Shown here: piece by piece, positions 36,619-58,301 of the stretch
Layout of the letters: each line of letters opens with the position of its first letter
Numbering within the stretch: position 1 is the first letter of the stretch
Source: Caecitellus pseudoparvulus
Taxonomy: Eukaryota; Protista; Bigyra: Bicosoecida
Assembly: GCA_965644315.1 (NCBI GenBank)
Contig: CBFFRQ010000089.1
Span: 248,001-312,000, forward strand
Reading direction: 5' to 3'
Length of the DNA: 64,000 nucleotides
Program-made: the position numbers and the translations under genes
The notes under the pieces: model-generated
What the model was told of the DNA's origin: nothing
The model's database searches: none
Seen by the model: only the letters and a program-made list of their open reading frames with translations

Positions 36619-36907
36619 TGGAGCTGTCGTAATGCACCCCTTCGCGCTCACCCAGCACTGTGCAGTCAGCAGGCTCTGTTGATGAGCCTGTGCAAGGGGC
36701 TCGGTTCCCTCGGACGCCTGCATTCCTTCGTGAGCTGCAGAATCCAAAAAGTTCAATGGACGACGCAGCACACAAGAAACATTGCCGTGGCGAGTGCTGT
36801 TCAACCTCAACAAGTTGCTCGGCTTACCACTTGTGCTAGGCGCTCTTGGCACCTGCATCACGCCCGTGCGCAGGCCATTTGAGAAACAGCGCGTGGCAGA
36901 CTGCAGC

Positions 36908-37492: not shown

Positions 37493-37671
37493 CACGCCTA
37501 CAGGCAGCCCCCCCTCCCCCCACTCGGTGCCCAAGAGCAAGCTAGCTGCATAGCCTTGCGATTTTACGGCTGCGATCAGCCCTGCAGTCGCCAGCCCATG
37601 GCTACACACGAATAACGCGGACAAGCCGTGCAAAAGTGCATTGCTCGGCTCGCCGCAGGGTAGTGTTCCAC

Positions 37672-39630
37672 TCACGCCAGAATGCCCTGCTCCACCTCCA
37701 GCTCCGCCATGTCCACGCCCCGGGCACGCAGCGAGCTGCGCAGTGCCTTGACCAGACCAGCCTCCGCCTCGCCACTGCCCAACACCGCCTGCACCACCGG
37801 CACCAAGTCACTGCGAGGCACACTGTGCCGCAGGTGGAACTCACACACAGCCCGCAGCGGCTCCCCCGCCTGGCCCAGCCCCAGCGCGAACTGCAACATG
37901 CCCACCGCGGACTCTGCGTCAGACAGGTCGTACCCAGCCACCATGCTGCGCAGGGCATGGGCCAACAGCCGCGGCTGCATGTGCATGCTGCCCAGCTGGG
38001 CCAGAGCAGGTGCGTCTTCCACGGCGTCTTCCTCTCGCACCGCCCCTGCTGAGAAGGGCGCCTCGGCAGGGGGGGGCAGGGTGCCTTGCGCCAGAGCTTC
38101 GGCTGGGTCCGCACCAGACACCACCGCGTGGGCCATGCCTCGCGCACTGACCAGCTCTGCGTGCAAGCCAGCAGCTGCCGCCTGACTCAGCGCCAGACGC
38201 CCCATGCGGTCAGTGTACAGGAACTCCACCATGTGGGCAGCTGCGTGGGTGCTGAGGTCAGTGTCAGGCAGACCCACGCCGGTGCTGGGCAGGGCCGCCT
38301 CCCCGCTGAACACGCCACCACTGGACGCTGCAGCACTGGGCTCCACTGGCGCACTGATCAAGCCGGAAGCCACTGCATGCCGCATGAAGAAGGACCGACG
38401 AGCCAGGATGCACTGGTGTGCAGGCAGCCATGCGTGCCCGGTGGCAGCCACAGGCGGCACATCCACCACCACAGAGCCAGTGGACAGACTGCGTGCCATG
38501 CCCAGCTCAGGCGGCGGCATGTCCAGACCGCCCTCACACCCTGGCGCCCACCGTGTCAACGTCAACACGCCATCCTCCCCGCCGCCCACGCTGCCAGGCC
38601 CATACACGACGCCATCGGATGCCACAGCAGTGCCGTGCTGAGCCAATGCCCCAGTCAGCTGCTCGCCCAGCTCAGCCGACACAGGCACTCGCAGACGCAC
38701 ATCAGCACCCACACCGTACACCAGCACAGCACTCAGCACACTGCGCACATGGCTCAGTCGCCCTCGGCTGCCTGACCGCCCCATGGCAATGTCAATCGTG
38801 GCAGGCCTCACACCTGCCCGCACCTCCTCCTGCCGCACCTCCACAGAAGCAGAGCCATGTGTGTGCTGCATGGCCAGCAGCACATCGCCCAGGGCGCCAG
38901 GTGCACACACCACCGCCGCGTGGCCTGGGCGCCGCACACGAGGCACACCTGCGCCGCTCAGCCCCCACCGGCGCACCAGCAAGCACACTTCCTCCACTTG
39001 CACTGGGTCGAACTGGGCCTGGCCAGTGTACAACCACTGCAGCGTCGCACTCAGGGCGCTGGCGCTCACTCCCGGCTCCTGGAACGTCAGCACGCCTGAC
39101 GCCGCCTCCCACACCCAGCTGCAGCCAGGCCCACCAGGAGCAAGGCCCTCGACGGCACCGTCACTGCAGATGGTTCGCCACGCACCCTCCAGCCGACGCC
39201 GCCATAGCCACGACACGCCTCCCAGAATGCAGGCGTGGGCGTACACGGCACCGATGCTGCTCGCGTCACACGTGTGGCCCAGTGCGTCCCCACTGGCCTG
39301 CAGTGCCGCAGCCCAGCTGGGCGGCACCAGGCTCGTCGCATCCCCAGGCACGAAGCTGCCCTCCTCCACATCCACGTCGCCCAGCAACGCCAACGCGTCA
39401 CAAACTGCAGAGTGCGGCGCACTGCCACCTGCTCGCACCTGTACGATGGGCGGCAGGGGGGCAGCTGCACCCTGCTCCACGCTGCGCAGAGCAAAGTCCG
39501 CCGGCGGGCTGCCCGCATCCACCTCCCCACTGCCTGCCGCCTCCCACAGTGCGCTGGCATCACGGACGAGGGATGGGCCAGGCACGGGGATGTGCGTGGG
39601 CCCAAGGGAAATGCTGAGCACCTCTCCCAT
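37672..39630. repeat. Inverted repeat block 3 (1,959 bp), partner at 55853-57811
   Basis: Encodes the BTB-BTB C-terminus. I count 8 amino-acid differences in 652 codons. Identity ends 4 nt after the stop codon. Confidence 0.95.
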
Positions 39631-42600
39631 TGTGAGGGTTCGCATGCCGCCTTGCGAAGCTGCTGCGATGTCTCGCTTGCCGCCCGCTGACGCTGGCGTG
39701 TCCGAGGAAGCCATGAAGGAGCCAGCCACTTGGCCCCAGCGCTGTCCCCCAAACACAAGCATCTCGCCTCCCACGACGGCAGCCTTTGCCCCTTTGCGAC
39801 CTGGCAGCGCCGTCGTCGGTGGCGGGCCGCTGGACACGGCGCTCTGGAACACCAGGCGCATGCTGCCGTCTGTCTCTCGCTGCGTTCCCCACTTACCCCC
39901 TGCGTTCAGCTTGTGCTCAGCGAGGGGCTTGTCAGACAGGAGTGACTCCCGCCACACGCCGTACACGGGGCACAGCAGAGCCTGGGCTACAACCTGGCGG
40001 CTCTGTGCCGTGCCTTGCATCACGTGAGCTGGCTGAGCTGAGCTGGAGCGGGCTGCCCGGGAAGCCAGCAGCATGCCAGTCCAAGACTCTGCTGCAGCGC
40101 CCCCTTCGCCAGCAGAGTCAACCGCAGCGCCACCCGTTGTTGCTGGCACTATTCCAGCATCAGAGCCAGGCCATTCAGCGCCACCTTGAGACTCCATTGC
40201 GATGCGCTCCTCGGCAGCTGTCAGGCTGGCGTCATCACGCTGCACCAACTCCAGCGTCCAGGTGTCCCCCAGAACACGCCCACCCTTCGTCTCCCCGCCA
40301 AAGATGCACACCTTCCCTGCCACACGCCCTGCCGCATGGCACGTGCGAGGGGGCGGCAGCTGCGTGCTACAGGGCGCAAACGGCAGTCGCCACCAAGTGG
40401 GCACGCCGCCACCCGCTCCGGCCGCCAAATCCAACACCCACACGTCAGAGCAGAGACCTGCGCCCCTGCCCTGTGTGGAACCACCCACCACCACCATGTA
40501 CTGCTTGCGCACAAGGGTGGCGCTGTGGCCGCTGCGCTGGGCGGGGGGCGTGCCAGCGGTGAGTGGCCAGCCCCAACAGGGGTCGGTGCCATCTCCTAGG
40601 CTGAGGAGGGCCAGGCCGCCGTTCTGCGGGGAGTCCACCTCCCCCATCACCAGCACACCTTCGTCCCCAGCACTGCCCACTGCCAAGGCAGAGTGCCCTG
40701 TCAGCTCCACCAAGTTTGCACCGCCAGCTGGGCGCGTGACGGCGGTCACCCTTGGCCTCAGTGTACTGATGCCCGCGAAGCACGGACGCAGCATAGTGAG
40801 CCCTGACCTCTGCTCCTGGCGCCCAGAAAGAGCACACTCGTACTCGCGCCAGGAGATGCACTGCCGATTGGCCAGCACCACAGCATGCTCCAGTGGATGT
40901 AAGTTGTCCACCTCCGGGCCACGCTGGGCTTGCCCGGGCACTTGCTGCAGGTGCACGTAGTCAGGCAGCGACTCACCCGAGCGGAGCGTATCCACCAGCG
41001 TATCTTCCTTCGCCGGGGACAGCAGCTGGCAGCGAGACACGAGCGGACCGACGTTGCGCATCACTTTGGCGTTGGGCTGGGTAGCGCACGTGCTGTGGTC
41101 CAGCACGTACACCGAGTAACTCGGTGTGTTCATGCGGCTGCTGGAACAGGCGAAGAAGTGCGTGTTCCACGCTCTCTCATCCACTGCTCGATCTACAATC
41201 TCGTACAGGCCTGCGTTGCCGCCGACGGCCAACAGCGGCACGGCAGCAGGTGCAGGGCGGCCTGGCCGTGCGGCTGCAGCCCGCTGCACGCGCTCGGCCG
41301 CCGTCTGCCAGCGCATGAGGGCGGAACGGCGCACCTTGGCATACGGGTTGCCTGTCACCACCCGTGCTTGCCGCAGTGCCTCGTCGCGTTCAGAGCGCTC
41401 CATCGCTGCAGCCATGTCCGCCGCTGGCACACCGGCGCCCTGACCTGCCGCGGCCATGCCGGCGCCCACCAGCGGCGCGCGGGCGGCTGCTTGTTCGCCG
41501 TCATGCTCCGGGAACTGTGCCGGCGCAGGGCCGTCAGAGTCACTGTCAAACAAGTGTTCCAGCCCCAGCGCGTCGTGCTCCGATTCGCTGCTGCTGCCGT
41601 CATAGTCCTCCGTACGGCGCCCAATCCGCCGCCAATCTGAGCGACTGTAGCCATCTGATTCACGAGAGGGATCCGGCATACGCGGGCGAACGGTCCAGTC
41701 ATTGATGGACAGCCATGCGCTGGCCTGCAGGGCATGGGTGCCGCACATGCCGCCCAGCAACACCACACGCCGATCAGGAAGCACGGTGGCTGTGTGTTCG
41801 TGCAGGGAGGGCAGGAAGGGCAGACTGTCCACCGTGGCTGTGCCTGTGCTGTGTGCCGCCAGCTGCAGAGTACGCTTGCCTGGTGGTGGGGGTGGCAACT
41901 TGCCGGCGCGGGGTGCAAGGCCTGATGCAGCGTGGGGGCCGCCTCGCGGCAACCACGTCAGGCCAGGCACATCCCACGCAAACAGCTCGTTCGAGATGCT
42001 GGACGCCGCGCCGGAAATGGAAAACGTCAAGCCCTGTGCGGCACGCAGGGCCGCTTCCGCACCACTGCGCCCTTCGCCGATGCCCACTGTCAAGCACTTG
42101 TGCTTGGCCTCTGGGCCTGAAGCGGAGTGCGTGCCGGCGAGGTACTGGTTCTCGTCGATAACTGAGCGCTGCATGTACCTATACCGGGGATCCAACGTGT
42201 GCTGAGGCTGCGAGGCGCGCACAGAACGCACAGATGCGCCAAAGCCTCCATGCACAAACACCAGGCGACCAATGGTGTACACCGCGGCGCCAGCACGCGG
42301 GCTAGGTGCGTGGCCACGGTGTAGCTCAGGCACCGTCACCACCGCCCCTGAGCCGAGGCGCACATTGCGCAGCAACTTGGGCGTGTGCTGCCCGTACCCC
42401 AGGCTGACCACCATGCTGCCGCCCATGGCCACGTGCATGTGCTGCGGCACCCAGCGCCAAGCCGGCTGGATGGCTGCAAAGGGGGTGATGTAGCCATACT
42501 CCCGCCCCCACACAGTGCAGGTCTCCAAGGTGGGGGCTTGCTCTGCCTCGGCCTGCACGGCGTGCTCGGGGGTGGCCCAGGCAGGCAGCACCAAGCTGCC

Positions 42601-45600
42601 GTCTCGCAGGAGGGTCGCGTCGAACCCCGCAGAGGTGCTGCCTGGGACCTGCGCAGACAGCACGGTGCAGCCCTCGCCGTCCTTCCGAGCGGCGACAGTT
42701 GTCCGGTGCACGGGCAGCGGCGTGACGCCCTCTGCGATGAACTCGTCCCGGAGCTGTTCCAGGATGGACCCCAGGGCGTTGCGGCCTTCCACAGTGTACA
42801 GACTGTACGGCAGCGTCGGCAGGTCGGCTCCGTCTGGCCCACGGCACTGTTTGAGAAGGGCCCAGATCTCGTCAGCAGCACGCACGACACCCTCCCCCAC
42901 GGCCTGCTCTAGGCCGGTTTCCGCCTCGTGTTCTCCCTGTGCTGTTGGCGCAGAGGTTGCGCCTGGGAAGTGCACGGACGCCATGGTGGGCTTGGACTTG
43001 GACAGCCCCAGTGCCGTCGCGGTGGCTCGCCCCAGCACCGGGTCCTGCATCATGCGCTTGAAGCCAGCCAAGTCCCGTAGCCCAGACTTGTCAGATGATG
43101 TCATTCTTGAGGGGTCTTCACCCTCCGCCTCCATCAACTTTGTCAGTCCGTGCTTGCCAAGGGCGTGGGGGCGAAAGTATGTGGTGTCTGAGATGGGGCG
43201 GTACGTGTGTGACCCGCGCATACGTTTGGGGGGCAGGTCCTTCGACGCTGTGTGCACGGAGATCACGCCTGTGGCGCCGATCTCCTTTGCATGCTGCTGG
43301 CGCCGGTCATACGCAGCCTTCGCAGCCTTAGTCATGTGGGTTTTCGCCTCTTCATCGCTGCTGTGACTGCCTTTCTCCTGCTGCAGCGGATCTGCCCCCA
43401 TGCGGCGCTTGGAGCCCTGCACACGTGGCGTCCTGCGGGCAGCCTTCTTGCCGCGCTGCTTACGCCGCTGTGGAGCGTCACTGTCGCCCAGCCGCTTCTT
43501 CGCAAGGGCATCCCGCTTTTTCTGCTTCCACGCCTCCGTGCTCTGTCGCCGCGTTTCGAACTGGTAGTCCGGGTCGTGGGCAAGGTCCTTGCCCAATCGG
43601 TAGGGTTCTGCCGCTCCACCATGACCATCCGAGCCTGTGGAGCCCTCATCACTCGACCCAGACTGGTCGCTGTCGCTGTTCAATTCGTCCTCTTCCGGTC
43701 GTTTGAGGGCGCGCAGCTGTCTGTTCAGGTTCTTAAGTTTAGCCTTGAAGCCCATGCTGTCCCCAGTCCCGTAGTTGGCCGGGCTAGGCTTAGCCAGGCG
43801 CTGCAGTGCAAGGCGCTGTGACACAGCTTCCACGTCATCACCCCCGAGGAGTCCCTTACCGGGTGTGGAAGAGTGCAGCAGCACGATGTCACCAGGCATG
43901 GCCTCGGCAGTGCTGCGACGGGAGGCGCCCCCCCTGAACCAGGCAGGTCCGGACCGCTTGGAGGCGGACTTCCCCCGGCTAGAGCCGGCACCCGACACGT
44001 TCTCGTTCACAATGCCGAGCACTGGCACGCGGCCGCCCTCGCCCACAGCGACACGGTGCACATCGAAGGCCCGAATGCCGATGCGTGTTGCGCTGAGAAT
44101 GGAGTCCTCGCCTGACGCGCTCAGCCGAGCGGACATCGTGTGCACGAGGCGGGCGGGGTAGGTAGACACGAGTGTGTGCTTCAGGTTGGGGTGGGCGGCA
44201 AAGCGCGCAGCCAACACTTCCCGCAAGACCTCCAGCTTGCAACTGCCCCAAGCCTTTTGCCCCACCCTGCGGTAGCTGACGGAGGACTTGAGGTTCAGCA
44301 GGGACCGCTGGCTCTCGAGGTCGTGCAGGTTGCTGGGGCTGGCGTGGCGCATGTTGGAGCTGCGAACCAGCCACACTTCTTGCTGGGGTGGCGGCCGGGG
44401 AACCCTGTTGGTGTTGGGAACGGCGTACAGCGAGCAGGGCAGGCTCAAATTCAACGCTGGCGTGTCTGGTACGGCGAGCGGCGCCACAGGGGTGGGCAGA
44501 TCAGCAAGTTCAGCTGCAGTCACCCGAGGTGCGGCGTCAGGGCTGTCCTCGCTGCCAGATTTTGACCCGGCAGCTGCTGATGGGCGATGTCCTGGTGTTT
44601 GGGAAGCTGATGAGAGCACCTTCAAGCAACGGGAAGCAGGTGCCTCCACCAGGACGCAAAGCGGCGCCGTTGGGCCATGGCCAGAGTACACCTGCACATA
44701 CGGCAGGATGTGGCTGGGCTTTGTGTTTTTTACTTCATGCACCTTCAGCGGGCGGGGAGCAAAGTTCCGTTGCATGATAGCAATTGGCCCACACAGTGAC
44801 ACGGGAAGTGAGGTTGGGAGCATCTTTTCGTGAGTCATACGGAACGCGCCGTCTGGCAGCGGCGGGGTGTAGTACCCGAACTGGTACCGGAACTCGGGCA
44901 TGTTGCGTTTTGCGTGGTACAATGTCCTGAAGGTGCTGGAAGCGAAGGAATTCACGCTTATCACGTTCAACGCGTACTCATGGCTGCTCATTCGCAACCC
45001 GGAAAGCCGAGCGTCCTCCTGCTGCCGCCCAGCCTGCTCTGCGAACGGCACAGAGCCCTTGCACGACAGCTGCTGCAGCACTCGAGGCATGGCTGTGAAG
45101 CGCTGGGCGGCAAAGGCCGCTGTGGCGTTCGGGTAAATGTGCCCGTCAAAGCTGAAGCTGAAAGGGCTTGACAGGCCCAAATCTTCTGCCCAGGACAGCT
45201 GGGATCCGAAGCTGACCCCTCGCTGGAACGCTGGCACGTCTGATCCCTTCAGCTGCTCGCCGACAACCAGCGCGTCATTCACGCTCCACCCAGTTGCCGC
45301 GGCGACCGCTGCGAACCTTGCACGCACCTCTGCAGGCTTGGAGGCCAGCTCTTCTGCCAGCGTGTCGAAGTGCCGGCGACGCCCAGACACACTCCGCTCT
45401 TCGTCCTTGGCATCGCCAGCGAGCCCCGCCAGCACGCCCTCCATCGTACGGGGAGCGTCGCCAGCCGCAGAATGACCACCACCGCCCCCCCCAACACCCA
45501 CTGACGTGTGCTCTGACACCCACGCATCATCCAACGCCACGGCATGCGGCATGCTGGGGGGACCCACATACCCATCCCCGCTGCCCACACCCGTCCCGCC

Positions 45601-46140
45601 CCCTGACGACCCACCCAACGCACTCGCCAGCATCGCCACCCCAGACCCCGACAGCTGACGCTCCAGCTCCACACCACCCGCAGCCCCCCCTCCTGACACG
45701 CCAGCCCCCGGCACTGCTGGCGGCACTGCACTTGCGCCACCATCATCCACACGAGCCACGGCTGCACGCCCCTTCCACACACTGCCACCCCCCGAACCCT
45801 TCGCCACACGCCCTCGACCCAGCACCGGCATGGCCTCGGCACTGCCCTGCGCCTGTGCAGGCACTGCTGCACCGCTGGCGCCCCGGGCCTTGCCCTTGTG
45901 CCGCACTGTGCTGGCGTTGGCCAGGAGGTCCACTGCCATGCCGCCATCGCCTTGGCCAGGCTGCTTGAGGTACAGGGCAGCTGTGCCGGCTGAGACCTGG
46001 CGGGCGAGGGTGGGCGCGCCGGGGGGACCAATGTCCAGGTCACCGGAGGAGTCTGACAGGTCGGAAGCTACTGAGCCGTCCTCGTCCACATACCCGCGCA
46101 CTTCCTTCAGACCTTTCGCAACAGAGCGGTGTGCAGCCAT
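37672..46140 (-). CDS. NADAR(YbiA)-like / kelch-repeat / tandem BTB protein, copy A (~2,822 aa)
   Basis: Lies within ORF 37672..46641; likely start MAAHRS at 46140. NADAR-like pieces: FSFDGHIYPNATAAFAAQRF, WGSCKLEVLREVLAARFAAHPNLKHTLVSTYPARLVH and GRNALGSILEQLRDEF. Kelch blades: PSPRAGAA..VFVHGG, HTATV..VLLGG, RSGHSATLV..VVVGG, RTCHAA..CIFGG. BTB motifs: AHACILG..LQWLYTG and AHQCILARRS..VEFLYTD. Confidence 0.85.
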   Translation of the reverse strand: MAAHRSVAKGLKEVRGYVDEDGSVASDLSDSSGDLDIGPPGAPTLARQVSAGTAALYLKQPGQGDGGMAVDLLANASTVRHKGKARGASGAAVPAQAQGSAEAMPVLGRGRVAKGSGGGSVWKGRAAVARVDDGGASAVPPAVPGAGVSGGGAAGGVELERQLSGSGVAMLASALGGSSGGGTGVGSGDGYVGPPSMPHAVALDDAWVSEHTSVGVGGGGGGHSAAGDAPRTMEGVLAGLAGDAKDEERSVSGRRRHFDTLAEELASKPAEVRARFAAVAAATGWSVNDALVVGEQLKGSDVPAFQRGVSFGSQLSWAEDLGLSSPFSFSFDGHIYPNATAAFAAQRFTAMPRVLQQLSCKGSVPFAEQAGRQQEDARLSGLRMSSHEYALNVISVNSFASSTFRTLYHAKRNMPEFRYQFGYYTPPLPDGAFRMTHEKMLPTSLPVSLCGPIAIMQRNFAPRPLKVHEVKNTKPSHILPYVQVYSGHGPTAPLCVLVEAPASRCLKVLSSASQTPGHRPSAAAGSKSGSEDSPDAAPRVTAAELADLPTPVAPLAVPDTPALNLSLPCSLYAVPNTNRVPRPPPQQEVWLVRSSNMRHASPSNLHDLESQRSLLNLKSSVSYRRVGQKAWGSCKLEVLREVLAARFAAHPNLKHTLVSTYPARLVHTMSARLSASGEDSILSATRIGIRAFDVHRVAVGEGGRVPVLGIVNENVSGAGSSRGKSASKRSGPAWFRGGASRRSTAEAMPGDIVLLHSSTPGKGLLGGDDVEAVSQRLALQRLAKPSPANYGTGDSMGFKAKLKNLNRQLRALKRPEEDELNSDSDQSGSSDEGSTGSDGHGGAAEPYRLGKDLAHDPDYQFETRRQSTEAWKQKKRDALAKKRLGDSDAPQRRKQRGKKAARRTPRVQGSKRRMGADPLQQEKGSHSSDEEAKTHMTKAAKAAYDRRQQHAKEIGATGVISVHTASKDLPPKRMRGSHTYRPISDTTYFRPHALGKHGLTKLMEAEGEDPSRMTSSDKSGLRDLAGFKRMMQDPVLGRATATALGLSKSKPTMASVHFPGATSAPTAQGEHEAETGLEQAVGEGVVRAADEIWALLKQCRGPDGADLPTLPYSLYTVEGRNALGSILEQLRDEFIAEGVTPLPVHRTTVAARKDGEGCTVLSAQVPGSTSAGFDATLLRDGSLVLPAWATPEHAVQAEAEQAPTLETCTVWGREYGYITPFAAIQPAWRWVPQHMHVAMGGSMVVSLGYGQHTPKLLRNVRLGSGAVVTVPELHRGHAPSPRAGAAVYTIGRLVFVHGGFGASVRSVRASQPQHTLDPRYRYMQRSVIDENQYLAGTHSASGPEAKHKCLTVGIGEGRSGAEAALRAAQGLTFSISGAASSISNELFAWDVPGLTWLPRGGPHAASGLAPRAGKLPPPPPGKRTLQLAAHSTGTATVDSLPFLPSLHEHTATVLPDRRVVLLGGMCGTHALQASAWLSINDWTVRPRMPDPSRESDGYSRSDWRRIGRRTEDYDGSSSESEHDALGLEHLFDSDSDGPAPAQFPEHDGEQAAARAPLVGAGMAAAGQGAGVPAADMAAAMERSERDEALRQARVVTGNPYAKVRRSALMRWQTAAERVQRAAAARPGRPAPAAVPLLAVGGNAGLYEIVDRAVDERAWNTHFFACSSSRMNTPSYSVYVLDHSTCATQPNAKVMRNVGPLVSRCQLLSPAKEDTLVDTLRSGESLPDYVHLQQVPGQAQRGPEVDNLHPLEHAVVLANRQCISWREYECALSGRQEQRSGLTMLRPCFAGISTLRPRVTAVTRPAGGANLVELTGHSALAVGSAGDEGVLVMGEVDSPQNGGLALLSLGDGTDPCWGWPLTAGTPPAQRSGHSATLVRKQYMVVVGGSTQGRGAGLCSDVWVLDLAAGAGGGVPTWWRLPFAPCSTQLPPPRTCHAAGRVAGKVCIFGGETKGGRVLGDTWTLELVQRDDASLTAAEERIAMESQGGAEWPGSDAGIVPATTGGAAVDSAGEGGAAAESWTGMLLASRAARSSSAQPAHVMQGTAQSRQVVAQALLCPVYGVWRESLLSDKPLAEHKLNAGGKWGTQRETDGSMRLVFQSAVSSGPPPTTALPGRKGAKAAVVGGEMLVFGGQRWGQVAGSFMASSDTPASAGGKRDIAAASQGGMRTLTMGEVLSISLGPTHIPVPGPSLVRDASALWEAAGSGEVDAGSPPADFALRSVEQGAAAPLPPIVQVRAGGSAPHSAVCDALALLGDVDVEEGSFVPGDATSLVPPSWAAALQASGDALGHTCDASSIGAVYAHACILGGVSWLWRRRLEGAWRTICSDGAVEGLAPGGPGCSWVWEAASGVLTFQEPGVSASALSATLQWLYTGQAQFDPVQVEEVCLLVRRWGLSGAGVPRVRRPGHAAVVCAPGALGDVLLAMQHTHGSASVEVRQEEVRAGVRPATIDIAMGRSGSRGRLSHVRSVLSAVLVYGVGADVRLRVPVSAELGEQLTGALAQHGTAVASDGVVYGPGSVGGGEDGVLTLTRWAPGCEGGLDMPPPELGMARSLSTGSVVVDVPPVAATGHAWLPAHQCILARRSFFMRHAVASGLISAPVEPSAAASSGGVFSGEAALPSTGVGLPDTDLSTHAAAHMVEFLYTDRMGRLALSQAAAAGLHAELVSARGMAHAVVSGADPAEALAQGTLPPPAEAPFSAGAVREEDAVEDAPALAQLGSMHMQPRLLAHALRSMVAGYDLSDAESAVGMLQFALGLGQAGEPLRAVCEFHLRHSVPRSDLVPVVQAVLGSGEAEAGLVKALRSSLRARGVDMAELEVEQGILA
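40195..40698. repeat. Inverted repeat block 2 (504 bp), partner at 54746-55249
   Basis: Encodes an identical 168-aa kelch segment (GHSALAVG...EERIAM) in both copies, with only scattered silent differences. Confidence 0.95.
45417..46064. repeat. Inverted repeat block 1 (648 bp), partner at 49464-50111
   Basis: Near-identical reverse complement with equal length in both copies; only 4 amino-acid differences seen in ~216 codons. Confidence 0.95.
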
Positions 46141-47231
46141 AGTGCTTGCCACTTCTGCAACATCATCTCGAGTTGCAGCACGGCGGACAGTTCGCCGAGA
46201 GAGACTTGCAGGCCCTTCGTAGCCATGTACAACAGAGTTCCCAACACTTCTGTCTGTGCATGGGCAGTGCAGGCAAGCGGTGTATCCAAAGGAGAACGAC
46301 TTGGGAACGGCGGGGTGGGCCGAATTCCGCAGTCGTCTCTCGCTTGTACGCACGCTTTCCAGTCCAGTGTCCGGGTAGAACATCCCGTGCCTGGTACAAA
46401 TACCCATGCTGCTTCTTGGACACCACTTTGGCATGCCCATCAGCCTTGCGGCGCTCGACGGCAGCCAGCGCCGCGCTTCCGGTGGCTCCAGGAAGGGAGC
46501 CTTGATCCATGCTCTGACCTCGTCCGATCTGGCTGATGCATGCGAGTGACAAGCAAGTAGAACCCAAGAAATCGCATGCTCGCATGTGGGGGGGGGGGAT
46601 TTGATACTGTATCTTGTCTCTTGGTGCGCGAGGCTGCACATTGAAGTCCCTTGGATACAGTAAACTAAACGCCAGCAACCAACGGGCAGGGGAGACTAGG
46701 CTTCATGGTCTGCTCCAAGGTGTACGCCAAGGACCACGCGAAGCACTGGCGGGAACAAGCACTTGCCATTCTGGCTGGCCTGCCCAAGCCTCGCTGCTAG
46801 TAACTTGACAATGGCTGTAGCCGGGGCTCTTGCGTTCCTCGCTGCACAGCGCGAAGAAGCCGGCTGTTGACGTTCGAATTTAGAAGATTCAGCACTGGGA
46901 GGTCTTGGAATCTGTACTTAACAAGTGCTGGCGCACCGGTGCCCCGCCCTGTCCTGCTGGGGGTGAGGCAAGCGCCGTCGCAGTGTGCACTTCAGGCCGC
47001 ACGCGCGACAGCCGCAAGCTGGCCAGGCTGCAGCACATGGGCACACTGCACCCTTCGTCACATACCTGGAGGAAGAAGTTTGGCTGGCAAGAGCATTATT
47101 CGCTACCTTTCGGGGCCCCATTGAAACACCACCCCACTTGCACACAGACAGCTGCATACCTGCCGGACTGCAAAGTGGGCACTTCATCAACTTCCGCAAG
47201 CAGCTACCCAAGTTGCAGTTGCCAGCCGTGC

Positions 47232-48452
47232 ATGGTTGGGCCGTCAAGCAGCATGGCCTTGAAGAATGATGATTCAAGGGCCTCTTTGTTTGGCAAGCAT
47301 GGTGTGCTCCGCCACATGCGCTGGGCTCATGCAGGCGTGCTGCTTGTCTTGGTGATGCTGCTGAACCTGGCATTCATGCCGTCCCAAACTGGAGCCGCAG
47401 AGACCTTCTTCGGCAACTCAATCCTCGTACAATCACTGGGATGGGCTCCAAGCTGCCCAGACTGGGCAGGGCACCCGGTCAGCAACGCCCTCCGGCGTGA
47501 ACAGCAGGCCCAGCAGCAGCCAGCCCTGCCCCAGCACTTCCACTCCAAGCTCAGCCTAGCAGGCGCTGTACGGCCGTACTCACAGCACGGCAAAAGGGAT
47601 GCATGGTTGACCCAGGCGTTAGTCGACAAGGGGTACACTCCCAACGCGGGGCAGACGGAGAACAACGCTGGGCTTGGCACAGTCAAGGCAGCGCAAGTGC
47701 GGCGACAGGTGTGCCCTTCTGGCATTCAAATGGATGACGCAGAGATCGCCGCGATGAGCAAATGGATGCAGGAGGGGGCCGAAGCGCACGGCAAGACTGC
47801 CTTGACCTCTGTGTACATGGAGTGGGGCACGGGCGGCTCCACCCTCCGGAATGGGCTGCGAGCTGGCCACGTATTCGCAGTGGAGCACCACGCTGACTGG
47901 TGTGCGATGCTGAAACGCTGCTTCGGCCACCTTGGATGGGACCACGTCACGACAGTGTGCGCGCCGCCCGATCTGCGCCACCGGGACTGGTGCCCCACGG
48001 AAACTGGCAGGGTGGGTTTGGACGAGGGGGGGCTCCTGTCGTTCCTGTCATACGTGAACGCTCCGTTGGATGCCGTGCTGCAGCGCGGTCTGCCTGCCCC
48101 AGTCCTGGACAGCATCCTCGTGGACGGGCGTGCTCGTATCGCCTGCGCCCTCCGAGCCTATGCCTTCATGGACATGGGCACTGCCCTCATGATCCACGAC
48201 TCCAACCGCGACTACTACCGACAGCGCCTTGCGCCCTTCTTTGACTTTGACGCTGAACGTGACTGCACCAAGTCAGAGAGTGGCATCTGCAGGCTGAGAC
48301 CCAAGCCAGAGCTCGTCGGGCGCATGTTGCCTGAGGAGTACATTGCCAAGGTGGCAGATTTGACCCACTACACGCCTGGTCTTTGGGCAGCGCCCAGGCT
48401 TCCTGCCACAGAAGACATGCCGCGACTCGCAGATGTGTGGAAGCAGCAGTGA
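47232..48452 (+). CDS. Type II membrane class I SAM-dependent methyltransferase-like protein
   Basis: A single N-terminal TM (AGVLLVLVMLLNLAFM) is followed by VYMEWGTGGST (motif I), AVEHHADW, DSILVDGRARIAC and LMIHD. Start is ATG 47232 or 47253. Confidence 0.75.
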   Translation: MVGPSSSMALKNDDSRASLFGKHGVLRHMRWAHAGVLLVLVMLLNLAFMPSQTGAAETFFGNSILVQSLGWAPSCPDWAGHPVSNALRREQQAQQQPALPQHFHSKLSLAGAVRPYSQHGKRDAWLTQALVDKGYTPNAGQTENNAGLGTVKAAQVRRQVCPSGIQMDDAEIAAMSKWMQEGAEAHGKTALTSVYMEWGTGGSTLRNGLRAGHVFAVEHHADWCAMLKRCFGHLGWDHVTTVCAPPDLRHRDWCPTETGRVGLDEGGLLSFLSYVNAPLDAVLQRGLPAPVLDSILVDGRARIACALRAYAFMDMGTALMIHDSNRDYYRQRLAPFFDFDAERDCTKSESGICRLRPKPELVGRMLPEEYIAKVADLTHYTPGLWAAPRLPATEDMPRLADVWKQQ

Positions 48453-49381
48453 GGGGGGCAGCTGGAGCGAGAGCGGCTCTTGTGCCCAGCAGCGAACTCG
48501 CAGGGACAAGGTGCTCAGAAGTTGGCAAGTGATATGAAGCGCGAGCACCTGCAGCCTCAACCGAGGCAAGAATTCCAGCATGTTGGCTTTCATTGAATTC
48601 TATCGGATTGGTTGTGTGTGGTTCTCACAGGCTTCTGCAGCTCTCTACATGAATCGCGACCCCCTTCCATTCGAGCCGAAACGTGGGTGAAACGCCCAAG
48701 CGGGGCCAGCCTTTGCCGCGCAAACGAGCGAAGGACCAACCTTGAGCCAAAGCCTTTCAGCAGGGGGTGCTATCATCCTTAGCTTGGTTTCATCATCTCA
48801 CTGGACTCTTTTCGGGCTTTCTTTCCAGTGCACGATGTCGATGCAGCATGTGCAAGCGCAGATCTCGATGCGACAGTTCTGGTGGGGTAACCACGACAAA
48901 ATCCAAGAAGCGTGCAGCACAACTGCGCTGCTACAATGAAACCAGCTCGGGACTTCAGTCAAAGTCCTGGCTTCCTCAGTCGCCGCGTGTGAGGCCACCT
49001 TTCGACATCGGCCGACAAGCACGTTCCGCCGCAACATGCAGCATTCCTCGAGTGACGCTGGAGCAGAGTTTGCCGCCTATGCTGCGTCAGAGGCAGCTGA
49101 TCGGCGCAAGTTTCATGGCAACGCGCACCACAAGGCAAAGCTGCGGGATGCGTTGCGCCACTGGGACTCTCGCTTGAAGTCACGTGTGTATCTTGCAGCG
49201 CCTGCTCCTTGCGGTTTTCGCAGCCACCACGCCATCGCTACTTGCTCGGCGTTCTTGCCTCACAGCTCATACCGAAAGCGATGAAGGAGGGAAAAGTGGC
49301 ATTGCAGCTTCAATCCGAGGCTCCAAGCCAGGCGACGTGCCTGGTGGCCACCATGCCAAGCACCACGGCGGTGCAAAAGTC

Positions 49382-52300
49382 ATGTCCGATGCTGCCCAAG
49401 TCGCGCTGCTGGCAGGCTCGCGCGCGGCAGCGGCACTGCAGGACGTGGCGGGAGACGAAGGTGCCGACCTGTCAGACTCCTCCGGTGACCTGGACATTGG
49501 TCCCCCCGGCGCGCCCACCCTCGCCCGCCAGGTCTCAGCCGGCACAGCCGCCCTGTACCTCAAGCAGCCCGGCCAAGGCGACGGCGGCATGGCAGTGGAC
49601 CTCCTGGCCAGCGCCAGCACAGTGCGGCACAAGGGCAAGGCCCGAGGCGCTAGCGGTGCAGCAGTGCCTGTGCAGGCGCAGGGCAGTGCCGAGGCCATGC
49701 CGGTGCTGGGCCGCGGGCGTGTGGCGAAGGGTTCGGGGGGTGGCAGTGTGTGGAAGGGGCGTGCAGCCGTGGCTCGTGTGGATGATGGTGGCGCAAGTGC
49801 AGTGCCGCCAGCAGTGCCGGGGGCTGGCGTGTCAGGAGGGGGGGCTGCGGGTGGTGTGGAGCTGGAGCGTCAGCTGTCGGGGTCTGGGGTGGCGATGCTG
49901 GCGAGTGCGTTGGGTGGGTCGTCAGGGGGCGGGACGGGTGTGGGCAGCGGGGGTGGGTATGTGGGTCCCCCCAGCATGCCGCATGCCGTGGCGTTGGATG
50001 ATGCGTGGGTGTCAGAGCACACGTCAGTGGGTGTTGGGGGGGGCGGTGGTGGTCGTTCTGCGGCTGGCGACGCTCCCCGTACGATGGAGGGCGTGCTGGC
50101 GGGGCTCGCTGAACAGCCGAAACTCCCGTCCCGGTCTTCAACACGCCTTCCTCCGTACCTCCGCCGCATGACACGCCAGCAGCGCGCCGTTGCTGCCGCA
50201 ACAGGGTGGAGTGTCTCCGATACAGTGGTGATAGGTGACGGCTTGGACGCAAGTGAGCTGGTTCCAGGCCAGAGCAAGGTGTGCATTGGAGGCAGGTTCG
50301 ACTGGCACGAGACGCTGTCGCTGAGTCATGACTTTCCATTCAGATGCTTCGGACTGGAGTTTTTCTGCGGTTGGTCAGCCTTTCTGTCGGCAAGGTTTCC
50401 TGGCATGCCCCGCATTCAGCAGCAGTGCACCACGCAGCACGAGCTGTCTTCATGGAGTGAAATCGCTCCCAGCACTGTGCAAGAACATAACCTCCCATGG
50501 CAGGGGCATCCATGGACGGCTTGGCTGACAGCGCTGAACTTGATTAGCACCGACGACTCTTCTTCCACCACGTTTCAGCGCAACTTCAAGGAAGCACGGG
50601 ACAAAGCAGCCGCTGCTGGGCAAAAGATCGTCCCTTTCGAACAGGCCTCCCACGCCTATGCCAACATTCATCGGTACTACAACTACAGCTATGGCTACGG
50701 CCACGCGCACAGTCGGCGTTTCAACTTGAAAGCTCTGCCGCTCATGCCAGGCTACGAGCCGATACAGCTGTGGAAGTACACGCTAGCAAACGAAGGGCAC
50801 TGGTTCAATGGCGCCATGCGATGGTCTTTCAGGGGGAGGCCCTCGAGAGTGAACAGCTCCTCGCCGATGCTTGCCAAGCTGCAAGCCCTCCGAGCCGGGT
50901 GCATGGGAGGAAGGACTTCCTCCCCTTACGGCTTCAGCCCCTTCCCCACCCCAGGCCCAAGCCCATCGGGACAGCACACTGTTCACCTGCGAGCGATGTC
51001 GCCAGCGATGAGCGGGTGTCTGACTGTCAGCTCTGTGATCGGCTTCGACGAGGGAATGCCGCGTCCCTCTGCTCGACCACTCACTGCGGCTGATTATCCA
51101 ACGGCAGTTCAGGCCGTGCACAAGCTCCGGCTGGAACTCACCACCACGCCCCTTTCCAAGTGCAAGTTCACCGTGGGTGCCCCCGGAGATGAAGGGGTGC
51201 TGCGGGATCCCCCCAAAACCCCCCACGTGACTGAAGTATGGCTAACGACTGCTCGAATATCGAAGAACATGTCACGGTATGTTCCGCACGATCTGCCCAC
51301 CCCCGCGGACCTGAGCAACGCTGCGGGGGCGCGCATGGCCAGCAACTTCTCCATGGACGCACCTGGCTTTATGGGGGAGGAACAGTGGGCAACGACACGC
51401 CAGATTGCCATGCTGGAGGTCTTGCGCCGCATGTTTCGGCCTGGATCTGAACGTGCAGCAGCGTTGGTTGCGACGTACCCAGCGCGGCTGGCGTACTGTG
51501 TCGGGGAGGCACAGCCAACCACTGCAGAGGACAAGCACTGGACTGCTCGGCACATGTGCCTGCAGCCGTGTGACTTGTTCCCCGAGCTGACCCCGGAGGG
51601 CCCGCAGCCAGACACCTTGCCGAGCTTCGGCACCCCCTTTGACGCAAATGGCCGGCCCTTGCCTCGAGACATGTGCATGGGGTTCGAGGGGAAGCCGGTC
51701 CACGGCATGCTCATTTCGCGATCAGCACAGGGTCACACCACGTCGCAGTATCTGCCAACCGCGGAGGCCTTGTCCAAGCAGCGTCAAGCAAGGCCGGTCG
51801 CTGAACAGGACGCGGTTGTGGCCCAGCAGCGCGTGCATGATCTGCGTCGGCAGATTGAAGGGGGTGGTGGCGAGACTGGGCGATCGTACGTGGAGCGCGC
51901 CCAGGCAGCGGCTGAAGCAAGCTCTGATTCAACGAAGCATGTGCAATCAGTGCAGCCAGCACATGAGGCTGCACGCAAAGAGGGCGAAGATGGCCCGAAG
52001 CCAGGCGAGAAGGGGTACCGAGCGCCAAAAGGGGCACGTGGCCGGCGGTCTGCTCCGCTCCGGGCGCGTGCATCTCCGGCGCAGGCTCCAGTAGCGCAGC
52101 AGGCGGATCAAGTCGCACGAGATGCTGACCTGGCGAAGAAGACGGGGCGCGGGCATTCCACGAAAAAGGAGAGCCGCCGCACCGCGCCGGCATCCAGGGC
52201 GCTTGCGGGTACGAGGGGCGCAACAGCACAGGGTGAAGAGCTCTCTGAAACGCAGAAGGGCACCATGATGCAGTTCCTGTCCCAGGCATGCGATGAAACC

Positions 52301-55300
52301 GGCAACCCCCTCCCCACCCTGCCTTGTCACGTACAAATTGTGGCAGGGCAGAATGAGCTGGGGTCCCTGCTAGAGCGAGTGCGGTCGGAGCTCATTCACA
52401 AAGGGCAAGCCCCCGCCCCGGTGACGCGGGAGTGCACTGGGCAGGCGGCTGTTGAGCGCTCCTTGAACCTGTCCCTTTCTCTTGCGCCAGATGGCACGAA
52501 ACCGAACGAGTTGGGGGTCTGCTTCCGGCACGGCAACATGCCTCTTCTTCCAGCTGACTGCGTGGAGAGCCAGCATGCCCTGCTTGACAGCGAGGGAGCA
52601 GCGGCAGGTGGCGGCACAGCTGGAGCTGCCTTTGACGCACAAGTGACTGCTCCCCTTGGAGCTCACGTGGACTGGGGTGACGGCTTCCGGATCCTGGTCC
52701 CTTCGGATTCGCTTCTCTCACACTCAATGTCCCGTGACACACACCAACTTCAACAAGCTACGTTTGCCGGGGCCCTGCACTTTGCCGGGCCGATGCTGGT
52801 GGATGCCGGCTACGGTCCGCATGCGGTACAAGTCATGCGCAGTGTCTTGACCCCCACGCTTTCTGGTCGCAAGAAGTCCCTGGTGCCCCGCCCGCACGCT
52901 ACTGTGGGCCCCAGTCCACGCACTGACGCGGCTGTGTACAGCCTTGGCGGGATCGTTTTCATGCATGGCGGGCGGGGCCCCAGTCTGCGTAACGCTTTCA
53001 GTGCTGATGCAGCTGCGGGCTCATCCACCTCTGCACAGTACGTGAGAGGGACGTACGTGCCCCCTCAAAGCACCCTTCGGCATGCCCTGGCAATTCGCAA
53101 ACTGCCACTGCCGACAACCGCACAGCAACAGCGCCGTGCTGCCGTCATGGGCACAGTCAGTACCGTGGGCGGTGTGGCGCACACTGTGTTCAACGAGATG
53201 TTCGCTATGGACACACGGCGGGGAACGTGGTTGCCTCGCGGAGGGCATTTGCGTGCGACGGGCTTGCGGCCCGATGCCCCTGAGCTGGAAGTTCCATCCC
53301 CTCATGAGCGTGCCTTGCGCCTGGCAGACCACTGCCTCAACCCAGACATGCCCAACGCGCTGCCTTTCCTGCCGTCCCTCTCTGGTCACACAGCCACCGT
53401 GATGTCAGATCGCCGGGTTGTGGTATTAGGAGGCATGTGCGGTGTACATGCGTTGGAACCTTCCCGAGGGTGGGGTGTCCGGAACGCCAAAGACTTCTTC
53501 TTGCTGCCCTGCCCTCGGATTCAAACTGGCCGCCCGTCGCGCTGGATGCGTGTGGGGCGTGGCGCAGTGAAGCACACCAACCTACAGCGCCCCACCGCAG
53601 AAGTGCTGCCCGGGGATGACTACGAGTCCACGTCGTCCGGGATTTCCATTGGAGGGCTCTTCGACAGTGACACTTCGGATGACGAGGCGGAAGCCCGACG
53701 CGCCGCACGCCGTGTCCGACGAGCTGCATTGCGAGGCCGTAGACAGCTTGCGAGGGCTGCTGCAGATGATGATGACCCCATCGGGACCGGTACGCGCTAT
53801 GAGCGGCCTGTGGGGGGCGTCGTCGTGCCTGAGATGCTGGGAGGCGGCGACTTTGACGCAGGCCACGCTGGCGGCCGCAGTCGGCAGCCAGCGGACCAGT
53901 TTGAGGCCTGGGAGTACCGGCGTGCGTTAGAGGCGGCCCAGGAACTGACGGGGAATCCAGCTGTGGAAATTGTCCGCACACGAGCTCGGATCTGGCAAGC
54001 CGCGCGTGAGAGGGCTCATGCTCTGCTGGCCCAAGGTGGTGCCGCTCTGGGTAGTGGTGGCGCGGCTGCCGAGGATGATGCCGCGATTCTGCGAGCCCTG
54101 GAAGACCGCGAGGTGGCCATGGTGGGGGCGGGCCACGCAGCAGCAATGCCCGGGACCGGCTCCCTGCCGCCACTGCCCCTGCTTGCCATTGGCAGTGACG
54201 TTGGGCTGTACCGCATCGTGCACCGGGACAGCGAGCACATCCTCCGCTCCTACGTGCAGTTCTATGCAGGCAGTCCTGAAAGCAAGGCCTCTTGCATGGT
54301 GTACATGCTGGACCATGGGCAGGGCTTGCTGTCCCCCCGAGTGACAGTGCTCACGAAAGGCGGCCCCCTGCTGCCCCGTTGCACGCGCCCGAGTGGCGAG
54401 GCCTGGGACGCTCTAGTCGAGGCAGCGGAAGGTCTCACAGAGGAGCGTGCCCAAACCCAGACGCTCTCTGAGTTCTGCGCTGCGCGGTGCACGCCCGAGC
54501 TTGCCCAGGACGTGTTCTTTGAGCACGCCGGCGTGGCACAGTCGAAGCGCTCAGGCCATGCCCGCTCCGTACCAAGCCAAGCACCTCCCTCTAGCCTCAT
54601 GAAGCTTCGCTCCGCAGACTACCTCCCCTGGCACATCACACAGCGACCCGTGCTTGAGGGTACGTTCGCTGGACTGCGGGTTCAGCAGCAGACGCTGGAA
54701 GATCTGGGAGACGGGGAGCACATTCCAGAGCCAGTGTCGCTGGTGGGGCACTCTGCCTTGGCAGTGGGCAGTGCGGGGGACGAAGGTGTGCTGGTGATGG
54801 GGGAGGTGGACTCCCCACAGAACGGTGGCCTGGCCCTGCTCAGCCTGGGAGATGGCACCGACCCCTGCTGGGGCTGGCCCCTCACCGCTGGCACGCCCCC
54901 CGCCCAGCGCAGCGGCCACAGCGCCACCCTTGTGCGCAAGCAGTACATGGTGGTGGTGGGTGGTTCCACACAGGGCAGGGGCGCAGGTCTCTGCTCTGAC
55001 GTGTGGGTGTTGGATTTGGCGGCCGGAGCGGGTGGCGGCGTGCCCACTTGGTGGCGACTGCCGTTTGCGCCCTGTAGCACGCAGCTGCCGCCCCCTCGCA
55101 CATGCCATGCGGCAGGGCGTGTGGCAGGGAAGGTGTGCATTTTTGGCGGGGAGACGAAGGGCGGGCGTGTTCTGGGGGACACCTGGACGCTGGAGTTGGT
55201 GCAGCGTGATGACGCCAGCCTGACAGCTGCCGAGGAGCGCATCGCGATGTATGCTACAAAGGTTGAAGAAGTGTATGACACGAAAGTCAGTGCCGAGTCC

Positions 55301-57811: not shown

Positions 57812-58301
57812 GTGGCGTGCTGAATGCAGTTTTGAGTGAGTCGTTCGGCATCTGGACGGCTGGCGCTGTGAAACGTCTTGCATTGTGAGCTTTGGCTCAT
57901 CCGCACGACAAGCACCATTCCCTTCCCCATGCCAAACCTCCAAAGGAAACGTCGCCCAGCGTTTGTTCAAGGGATAAATATCATTTTGCTTGTGTCTCTA
58001 TCGTCTTTCCGTGGTGTGGCTTTTCGTGGTCAGCGCTTGTTTTGCTGGCTTCCATTGGAGCCTGACAATTTCCGCAGCGACATTTTTAAGGCCGACCTAC
58101 CTCGACTAAACACCTGTACTTGCGCGTGTAATTGATCGGAATCATAGAAAAAGCCTAATTTTAGCCCCTTTCGACGTCAATCTTTCACACGGCTGAAGTG
58201 CTTGGGCTGGGGAGGTCCACGTGTCAAGCTGCGGTTTTTGCTGCAACGTCACTCGATAGCACTTGACAAGTCAACCAATCCTGAAGCCGCAGGGGGGCAC
58301 C

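Follow-up and report, generated by a model that had tools for sequence, protein, structure and literature searches.

The 64,000-nucleotide stretch of marine protist DNA analysed here (the window) contains two head-to-head paralogues, copy A on the minus and copy B on the plus strand, each a single ORF of about 2,800 aa. A sequence-only reading had recognised in both a NADAR-like domain split by long insertions and fused to kelch repeats and two BTB domains. Two questions follow: whether the separated motifs belong to one NADAR domain, and what such a domain might do in a protein resembling a Cullin-3 adaptor. Alignment with copy B and with a third, diverged family member from a related protist (L072; protein P0006) suggests that copy A starts at M168 of a 2989-aa ORF (37672-46641); copy B, also by alignment, likely starts at M67 of a 2875-aa ORF (49184-57811). 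The Pfam annotation of these proteins calls the kelch part alone. The features are collected in Table 1.

Table 1. Features of copies A and B in window coordinates
Feature	Position	Strand	Remarks
Copy A gene	37672..46140	-	stop-free single ORF; 2822 aa
A NADAR piece 1	45085..45225	-	aa 473-519; first hairpin and helix 1; pLDDT 78-94
A insertion 1	44317..45084	-	aa 520-775, 256 aa; predicted mostly unstructured
A NADAR piece 2	44092..44316	-	aa 776-850; core helices; pLDDT 78-96 (aa 800-859)
A insertion 2	42802..44091	-	aa 851-1280, 430 aa; basic, few order-promoting residues
A NADAR piece 3	42727..42801	-	aa 1281-1305; G.N.LG..L..R helix fully retained; pLDDT 77-96
A six kelch blades	39607..42324	-	about aa 1446, 1610, 1980, 2035, 2097, 2280; long linkers between
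A BTB-like domain 1	38962..39609	-	about aa 2345-2560, with insertions; Pfam BTB E 0.008, sole match
A BTB-like domain 2	38152..38874	-	about aa 2590-2830; weakly supported; Pfam BTB E 0.16, sole match
A C-terminal tail	37675..38019	-	helical, BACK/3-box-like; low-confidence model
Copy B gene	49382..57811	+	stop-free single ORF; 2809 aa
B NADAR piece 1	50273..50410	+	aa 364-409; alignment and residue mapping
B insertion 1	50411..51298	+	296 aa
B NADAR piece 2	51299..51544	+	aa 706-787; profile and residue mapping
B insertion 2	51545..52330	+	262 aa
B NADAR piece 3	52331..52408	+	aa 1050-1075; Pfam and profile
B six kelch blades	52892..55873	+	long linkers
B BTB1, BTB2, tail	55874..57811	+	nearly identical to A
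Shared block 1	45417..46064		N-terminal low-complexity region; 98% identical to 49464-50111, inverted orientation
Shared block 2	40195..40698		kelch blades 3-5; 98% identical to 54746-55249
Shared block 3	37668..39630		BTB region; 98% identical to 55853-57815

Detection and predicted fold of the NADAR domain

All six motifs of the sequence-only reading, three per copy and in order, were confirmed where it had placed them: at 45156-45097, from W798 at 44250, and at 42786-42739 in copy A, and at 50333-50400, 51386-51541 (EDKHW at 51527) and 52346-52393 in copy B. A profile built independently from 53 distinct intact viral NADARs and E. coli YbiA finds exactly three pieces in the 2989-aa ORF of copy A (aa 495-524, 777-833 and 1284-1304), arranged in profile order, and two in the ORF of copy B (aa 733-769 and 1054-1076). 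When the profile alignment tolerates long insertions, copy A scores 73 bits versus 14±6 for local shuffles (maximum 30) and copy B, weaker than A, 28 bits versus 12±5 (maximum 26.5); in the same alignment, none of four further long ORFs in the window exceeds 15 bits. The curated profiles point the same way from below their cut-offs: Pfam NADAR matches aa 783-835 of copy A (E 1e-4, under the gathering score) and is the sole, sub-cut-off match of motif 3 in both copies, and the matches to YbiA 2b3w (E 3e-4) and TIGR02464 (E 2e-4) are likewise sub-cut-off. Motif 1 of copy B is undetectable alone and is placed by alignment to A and the third member. Given 35 intact NADARs, MAFFT places their E, W, LxE and G.N.LG motifs on the three pieces without guidance. 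One alignment offered another site for motif 1 (about aa 700 in A, YPTAVQ in B), which is not kept in A. The site at aa 495-515 is kept in A and L072, is the one the profile picks, and is also where MAFFT settled in 13 of the 15 settings of one alignment series and all seven of another. Judged by whole-domain profile similarity, with the pieces in order, A and B belong to the NADAR/YbiA superfamily.

The AlphaFold model, run with intact NADARs in the alignment, is partly circular, as the alignment supplies NADAR contacts. In this model, pLDDT reaches 77-96 on the three pieces, most of the insertion sequence falls below 50, and strands are predicted at both ends of insertion 2. The top two PDB matches of the model in Foldseek are YbiA and the Phytophthora NADAR (8bau), both local (66-68 columns) with E 0.4. 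A viral fold library gave noise, except that a YbiA-like protein had the highest probability among the matches listed. Within these bounds the three pieces may assemble into one YbiA fold, which is a helical core with two small hairpin sheets.

The presence of the insertions holds, and their sizes, earlier given as about 270-450 aa, are corrected to about 256 aa for insertion 1 and 430 aa for insertion 2 of A, with about 296 and 262 aa for their counterparts in B. They carry small conserved elements of their own, in copy A a short EVWL-type element close to the end of insertion 1 and one family-conserved helix in insertion 2. Since every domain of the protein, kelch and BTB included, is stretched by long insertions, the splitting of the NADAR is a property of the whole protein.

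Kelch and BTB regions, shared blocks and relatives

The earlier assignment of kelch plus two BTB domains stands for the kelch part, which is firm (six blades; PF24681, E 4e-22), whereas the BTB domains can be called only BTB-like, with Pfam E 0.008-0.17, below threshold. For BTB1, the pairwise test against 12 BTB domains gives 366 versus 280±15; for BTB2 the summed score is not significant, and 7 of the 12 templates land on its AH..IL motif. Poxvirus BTB domains entered pairwise comparisons only, with no consensus. PDB sequence searches with the BTB regions returned chance matches only. In a Foldseek search with the tail, SPOP BTB/3-box chains have the highest probabilities, but E exceeds 1, and Pfam BACK has no match. 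By sequence only about 30 aa lie between BTB1 and the first BTB2 helix, so there is no first BACK, and the BACK-like tail comes after BTB2 only. Support is strong for kelch, moderate for BTB1, and weak for BTB2 and the BACK/3-box-like tail.

The two copies form a mosaic in which blocks of 98% identity (n=3) alternate with blocks of about 25-30% identity; in shared block 3, identity ends a few bases past the stop codon. The three blocks probably arose by gene conversion. They are under purifying selection. For the BTB block, comparison of A with B gives a pN/pS of 0.09; for the kelch region, comparison of strains gives 0.03-0.24. The NADAR had been placed in the most variable segment. It does lie in the diverged part, but so do kelch blades 1, 2 and 6, whose divergence is just as great, and it lies there only because the other blocks have been homogenised.

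Outside this small family, no NADAR joined to kelch was found among 1.84 billion representatives or in papers, in agreement with the claim that no described protein has this combination. Word searches with the whole of A and with its kelch-BTB part retrieved P0005 only and no LZTR1-like relatives. P0005, considered as a third paralogue, is an A/B chimera on a gapped scaffold of the same organism and was treated as a misassembly. Exact look-ups of A and B gave no match, scans of JGI metagenomes, bacterial genomes and viruses gave no relatives, and inspection of synteny at SepSecS revealed no A/B homologue in the three nearest relatives.

Ligand contacts and the possible role of the domain

In the solved complex of the Phytophthora NADAR, E43 and E125 hold the distal ribose, and the pyrophosphate is held by K50, R79, W89, R93, W133 and D130 (PMC11543638). 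The position of E43 is occupied by T507 in A, W397 in B and Q in the third member, that of E125 by H834, Y771 and F, respectively; the EH motif is absent from both copies, as had been noted, with A508 in place of H in A. The lysine K50 is replaced by R514 in A and R404 in B. Piece 2 retains W798, K802 and D846 in A, with L849 at the W133 position, and W735, R739, D783 and W786 in B. The earlier statement that D..W survives only in B is right for the tryptophan, not for the aspartate. With K/R swaps counted as kept, 4/6, 5/6 and 4/6 pyrophosphate contacts remain in A, B and the third member. At the level of sequence, both catalytic glutamates are lost in all three members, yet most pyrophosphate contacts are kept. 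This pattern, which suggests loss of NADAR catalysis, lends some support to the earlier proposal of a non-catalytic reader.

Taking the domains, their order, the residue pattern, the coding status, the purifying selection and the mosaic identity as shown, the reading tentatively preferred is that A and B are Cullin-3 adaptor-like proteins whose pseudo-NADAR binds a phospho-nucleotide ligand and guides ubiquitylation. It assumes that a kelch-BTB-BTB-tail substrate-adaptor-like protein gained an N-terminal YbiA-type NADAR, the three pieces of which would fold together while two long, largely disordered insertions loop out at positions that are already variable in length among intact NADARs (the Phytophthora NADAR has about 33 residues at the site corresponding to insertion 2). 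Because the glutamates are lost and most of the phosphate-binding cleft is kept, the domain would likely bind rather than cut its ligand. This ligand is predicted, speculatively, to be ADP-ribose, or an ADP-ribosylated protein or nucleic acid. The ligand-bound NADAR might then help to select or gate ligase targets, a speculative coupling to ubiquitylation, with CUL3 presumably bound via the C-terminal region. An old inverted duplication would have produced two versions with different recognition halves, and gene conversion would keep their ligase-facing parts alike.

The most serious rival, although a somewhat unlikely one, is that the NADAR is a dead structural scaffold that binds no nucleotide and presents insertions which, with kelch, bind protein substrates of a CUL3 ligase. 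R79 is lost in all three members, K50 (M in the third member) and K75 are not retained throughout, and the adenine-binding loop is reshaped and differs among them. Conservation is highest at residues of the core (F, L, T, G.N.LG..L..R), W89, D130 and W133 may be retained for folding alone, and the conserved elements of the insertions, together with insertions in all domains, suit a scaffold as well. Against it, all three members, at about 25-35% identity, still have the aspartate D130 and a basic residue at the R93 position, and the change of K50 to R in A and B is independent of the surrounding divergence; all of these are ligand contacts in the solved complex.

Copy A may not be dead. Active NADARs have E (YbiA), D (BC4488) or, in phages, H at the E125 position, E88A (the E43 equivalent) has a minor effect in vitro, and K95R keeps activity in vitro, so that K50 to R is tolerated there (PMC11543638). 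Copy A carries that histidine and is the best-scoring family member against the NADAR profile. It is nevertheless improbable that at least copy A still acts as an N-glycosidase on an adaptor, whether as an ADP-ribose remover or as a hydrolase of riboflavin intermediates: H44, Q47, R79 and W133 are lost in A, the histidine is not conserved in B or the third member, and E88 mutants fail in vivo (PMC11543638).

It is similarly doubtful that A and B act as a diversifying immune receptor directed at giant viruses or toxins, with variable recognition halves and a constant ligase end. The mosaic identity would suit this, NADARs have roles in conflicts over toxins and between viruses and hosts (PMC9503650), and the KB8 assembly, in which genes of this organism occur, contains mavirus-like virophage genes as well (PMC10120064). 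However, only two copies are seen, both types are almost unchanged in another strain, and pN/pS is 0.14-0.24 in those unique segments, outside the NADAR, that could be compared. The neighbours are housekeeping genes, PADLOC gave no match, and neither a partner transferase nor a defence gene lies near A or B. The defence role suggested earlier is not supported, and there is no sign of positive selection or of a defence neighbourhood.

Very improbable, finally, is that the insertions are in-frame introns and the split an annotation artefact hiding a compact mature NADAR, for although introns do occur in this genome, some of them in frame and free of stops (HSF gene), the intron of the neighbouring Rab-family gene spans about 80 nt versus 770-1290 nt without stops in the insertions, which have borders without a donor motif, use bases in a coding manner, keep protein similarity to the other species (z 4.8 and 7.2) and in L072 (insertion 1) are themselves broken by two short GT-AG introns, and so are probably coding.

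To our knowledge, every NADAR tested to date is an eraser. If the pseudo-NADAR does bind its ligand, it would represent the first case of this fold acting as a reader and would open a new path from ADP-ribosylation to ubiquitylation. The fuller claim, a first NADAR pseudo-enzyme reading ADP-ribose or ADP-ribosylated nucleic acid on a Cullin-3 ligase, in two specificity variants with a shared gene-converted ligase module and possibly directed against virus- or toxin-made marks in a heterotrophic protist, is unlikely as a whole. The two natural variants, with different pockets, make the reader idea directly testable; if the domain binds nothing, what remains is an odd lineage-restricted architecture of modest interest. 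In either case, domains split by several hundred residues escape standard annotation. The roles of eukaryotic NADARs are an open question (PMC11125620).

Comparison with known systems

The YbiA subfamily (2b3w; Phytophthora nicotianae 8bau; PF08719; TIGR02464) has its core elements in the same order and sequence in A and B, with W89, R/K93, D130, the G.N.LG helix and the T.PA.L strand in common. The A/B domain differs from it in two insertions of 256-430 aa, the loss of E43 and E125, and scores below curated cut-offs. The NADARs described so far stand alone, serve as antitoxins, or are joined to enzymes and other ADP-ribose domains, whereas here the domain is part of a kelch-BTB protein of 2,800 aa. 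P0023 (Logan; 927 aa), considered by its length as a compact NADAR-kelch-BTB protein, actually consists of four tandem NADARs. Several of them have an aromatic residue or H at E125 and two lack E43, as in A and B, so degeneration of NADARs is not confined to this family; unlike A/B, they are compact and unsplit, without kelch or BTB.

In LZTR1, kelch precedes BTB-BTB (PMC8154269), the reverse of the usual BTB-kelch order. This CUL3 adaptor for RAS/RIT1 (six kelch, BTB-BACK, BTB-BACK) and A/B alike have six blades N-terminal to two BTB or BTB-like domains. A and B are more than three times longer, carry the extra NADAR, lack the first BACK and have a weak BTB2, and the ATRN/LZTR1 propeller profile gives 27.8 bits versus a cut-off of 50, weaker than the KLHDC2-type profile. 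Of the LZTR1 likeness in the sequence-only reading, the kelch-BTB-BTB layout stands, and it is a resemblance of layout only.

Among E3 ligases that read ADP-ribose, RNF146 uses a WWE domain, PARP9/DTX3L macrodomains and DTX2 a DTC domain. DTX2 exemplifies reading by another fold (PMC12402299). All are RING-type ligases with reader folds unrelated to NADAR, and neither a NADAR reader nor a comparable CUL3 adaptor is described in the literature searched. The logic proposed for A and B would nevertheless be the same, namely that an ADP-ribose mark is read and ubiquitylation follows.

Two inverted paralogous genes

The window is gene-dense, intron-poor eukaryotic DNA of 56-69% GC, and the flanking DNA is 94-98% identical to ENA metagenome and Logan run contigs. 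The giant paralogous genes A and B are divergently oriented, with a single unrelated gene in between; this gene has no Pfam match, and its PADLOC match is marginal (E 0.01). Three blocks, namely the N-terminal low-complexity part, kelch blades 3-5, and the entire BTB region, show 98% DNA identity between A and B and lie between fully diverged segments (window 37668-46064 vs 49464-57815, inverted); outside them, protein identity is ~25-30%. Within these blocks, synonymous divergence is 0.045-0.085; for a pair of short conserved motifs beyond them it is 0.6 or more. The final block terminates at the stop codon. Judging by this comparison, the pair likely arose through an ancient inverted duplication, and the inverted genes have probably undergone gene conversion recently. 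Metagenome contigs also break at the inverted repeat, and the ‘Symbiodinium sp. KB8’ assembly (GCA_905221625.1) contains both A-specific and B-specific segments; thus, the repeat is not confined to the present assembly. The KB8 gene model P0005 (scaffold L005), named rngB, is an A/B chimera. Genes 95-98% identical to those of the present protist occur in that assembly, which appears to include a second organism; the window's aquaporin shares a 90% cluster with a KB8 protein. Probably the protist is no dinoflagellate but a flagellate of bicosoecid type that shared the KB8 culture. SepSecS groups firmly only with metagenomic sequences, its nearest relatives (56-59%) being metagenomic protists.

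Features of the window and of related contigs (window positions unless a contig is named)
Feature	Position	Strand	Remarks
Single ORF, 4869 aa	5447-20056	-	repeat-rich, surface-protein-like; one weak TSP1 match
EMC1-like protein	23132-27901	+	~1,590 aa
HSF-type DNA-binding gene	32674-35553	-	seemingly with a short in-frame stop-free intron within the domain
Rab/Ras-family GTPase gene	35909-36620	+	one intron, ~80 nt; ~1 kb away from A 3' end
Gene A	ORF 37672-46641; likely start 46140	-	stop-free ORF
N-terminal motif, A	45800-46000		no Pfam match
Gene between A and B	46905-48452	+	predicted membrane anchor, methyltransferase-like motifs (by eye)
Gene B	ORF 49184-57811; likely start 49382	+	stop-free ORF
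N-terminal motif, B	49520-49720		no Pfam match
SepSecS gene	59940-61439	-	intronless
N-terminal motif, third member	L072:427-560		no Pfam match
Stretch similar to kelch blade 1	L073:2277-2423		40-49 aa; ENA metagenome DRIS22-1

A NADAR domain in three pieces

The NADAR domain that the sequence-only reading had recognized in A and B is real, as Pfam, PDB sequence search, TIGR02464, our own profile, insertion-tolerant alignment, and MAFFT agree. Pfam NADAR matched A at aa 783-835 (E 1e-4) and was the sole Pfam family matched by motif 3 of both A and B; YbiA was the top match in the PDB sequence search, and the TIGR02464 profile also supports the assignment. A profile made from intact viral NADARs and YbiA found exactly three pieces in A, in profile order, and two in B. 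When long insertions were permitted at flat cost, A scored 73 bits (14±6 for local shuffles) and B 28 bits (12±5), and other long ORFs reached at most 15 bits. MAFFT aligned intact NADARs so that their motifs coincided with these residues of A and B.

AlphaFold, run with an alignment including intact NADARs, assigned pLDDT 77-96 to the three pieces of A and mostly below 50 to the insertions, with one helix of insertion 2 reaching 82 and strands predicted at either end of this insertion. Foldseek ranked YbiA first and the Phytophthora NADAR next; however, the matches were local only, with E 0.4. The three pieces would assemble into one fold according to this model, which is partly circular owing to the supplied alignment and was judged by pLDDT and the Foldseek matches.

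The insertions (256 and 430 aa in A, 296 and 262 aa in B) are free of stops and have the codon-position GC pattern of the domains, and no splice-donor motif was found at their borders in A or B. Their protein similarity is significant between A and the third member, P0006 (z 4.8 and 7.2), but not between A and B. In contig L072, which encodes P0006, insertion 1 is itself split by two short GT-AG introns, as read from the sequence; the pieces either side were searched separately, unjoined. The insertions in A and B look like coding sequence; the intron found in the nearby Rab-family gene is ~80 nt long. Comparison with KB8 shows purifying selection on linkers of the kelch region (pN/pS 0.14-0.24). 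One NADAR insertion follows helix 1 and the other separates WG from G.N.LG; both sites vary among intact NADARs, and the second holds ~33 residues in the Phytophthora nicotianae structure 8bau. Similar stretching affects the kelch propeller and both BTB-like domains, so that splitting characterizes the protein as a whole. The EMC1-like protein exceeds the usual length of its family; proteins of this genome may often carry long insertions.

Putative adaptor part and distribution of the architecture

Six kelch blades are clear. BTB1 is supported by its sole Pfam match, BTB (E 0.008), and by pairwise comparison with 12 viral BTB domains, which gave 366 vs 280±15. BTB2 has its motifs in the correct order and BTB as its sole Pfam match (E 0.16), but taken alone this second domain is not significant. 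When BTB2 and the tail were modelled from single sequence, at low confidence, SPOP BTB/3-box chains had the highest probabilities listed, with E > 1. Upstream of the NADAR, a short motif, RQVS.GTA.LYL..P...GM.VDLLA.A.TV..KGK, shows strong conservation between species.

A profile of A and B spanning NADAR piece 2 through kelch blade 2 was searched against 1.84 billion representatives and returned 44 proteins, two of which are family members: P0006 (E 8e-13) and P0007 (82 aa). Contig L072 (JGI, 58% GC) encodes, at ~32% identity, the N-terminal motif seen in A and B, NADAR piece 1, and a piece 2 in which D..W is present; it stops ahead of piece 3, so that its sequence covers neither kelch nor BTB parts. 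All remaining matches were either plain NADARs or plain proteins of the kelch-repeat type, and no match combined the two. Plain NADARs scored 36-38 bits at best, and plain kelch proteins as much as 51; therefore, a protein matching both well should rank high, although a remote, compact homologue that matches each part weakly could have escaped the search. The literature searched likewise contained no NADAR-kelch or NADAR-BTB protein, which bears out the earlier statement that no such combination had been described. On these sequence comparisons, we regard a split, probably non-catalytic NADAR followed by six kelch blades, a BTB, and a putative second BTB as a real, lineage-restricted new architecture. 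The stretch in L073 shares 53-62% identity with kelch blade 1 in A/B; this contig is otherwise AT-rich and without other similarity, and is either chimeric or holds an exon of an intron-rich relative.

Active site and proposed function

The complex of the Phytophthora NADAR has the distal ribose bound by E43 and E125 and the pyrophosphate by K50, R79, W89, R93, W133, and D130 (PMC11543638); the numbering was cross-checked. E43 is replaced by T, W, and Q in A, B, and the third member, respectively, and E125 by H, Y, and F. In all three, W89 and D130 are retained and R79 is absent; K50 corresponds to R, R, and M, R93 to K, R, and R, and W133 to L, W, and W. The catalytic acids are lost and the phosphate cleft is mostly retained; the domain is probably non-catalytic. 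This pattern fits a binder such as the reader proposed earlier; however, the kept residues may be structural. Degenerate NADARs are not unique to the family: P0023 (Logan contig, 927 aa) has four tandem NADAR domains, some without E43 or E125.

The most likely model, a tentative one, is a CUL3 adaptor in which the pseudo-NADAR would bind a phospho-nucleotide mark. Its main rival, a NADAR that is an inert scaffold for insertions, is somewhat less likely. Copy A could also still be an active hydrolase, since phage NADARs carry histidine at the E125 position, as A does, and in a tested NADAR E88A (the E43 equivalent) had a minor in vitro effect and K95R (that of K50) retained in vitro activity (PMC11543638). 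A defence role is possible, but no direct sign of it was found: the neighbours are housekeeping genes, the PADLOC search for defence systems was blank, and comparable unique segments of A/B are conserved between strains.

The CUL3 adaptor model has an analogue in DTX2, which reads an ADP-ribosyl degron (PMC12402299). In LZTR1, kelch is placed ahead of two BTBs (PMC8154269), an order that A and B resemble with their BTB and putative second BTB. The proposed LZTR1 likeness is one of layout; the LZTR1 propeller profile fell under the cut-off and the first BACK is absent. The presence of a Rab/Ras-family gene near A, despite the LZTR1-RAS link, is probably a coincidence. We infer that A and B work like a CUL3 adaptor, and do not class them as LZTR1.
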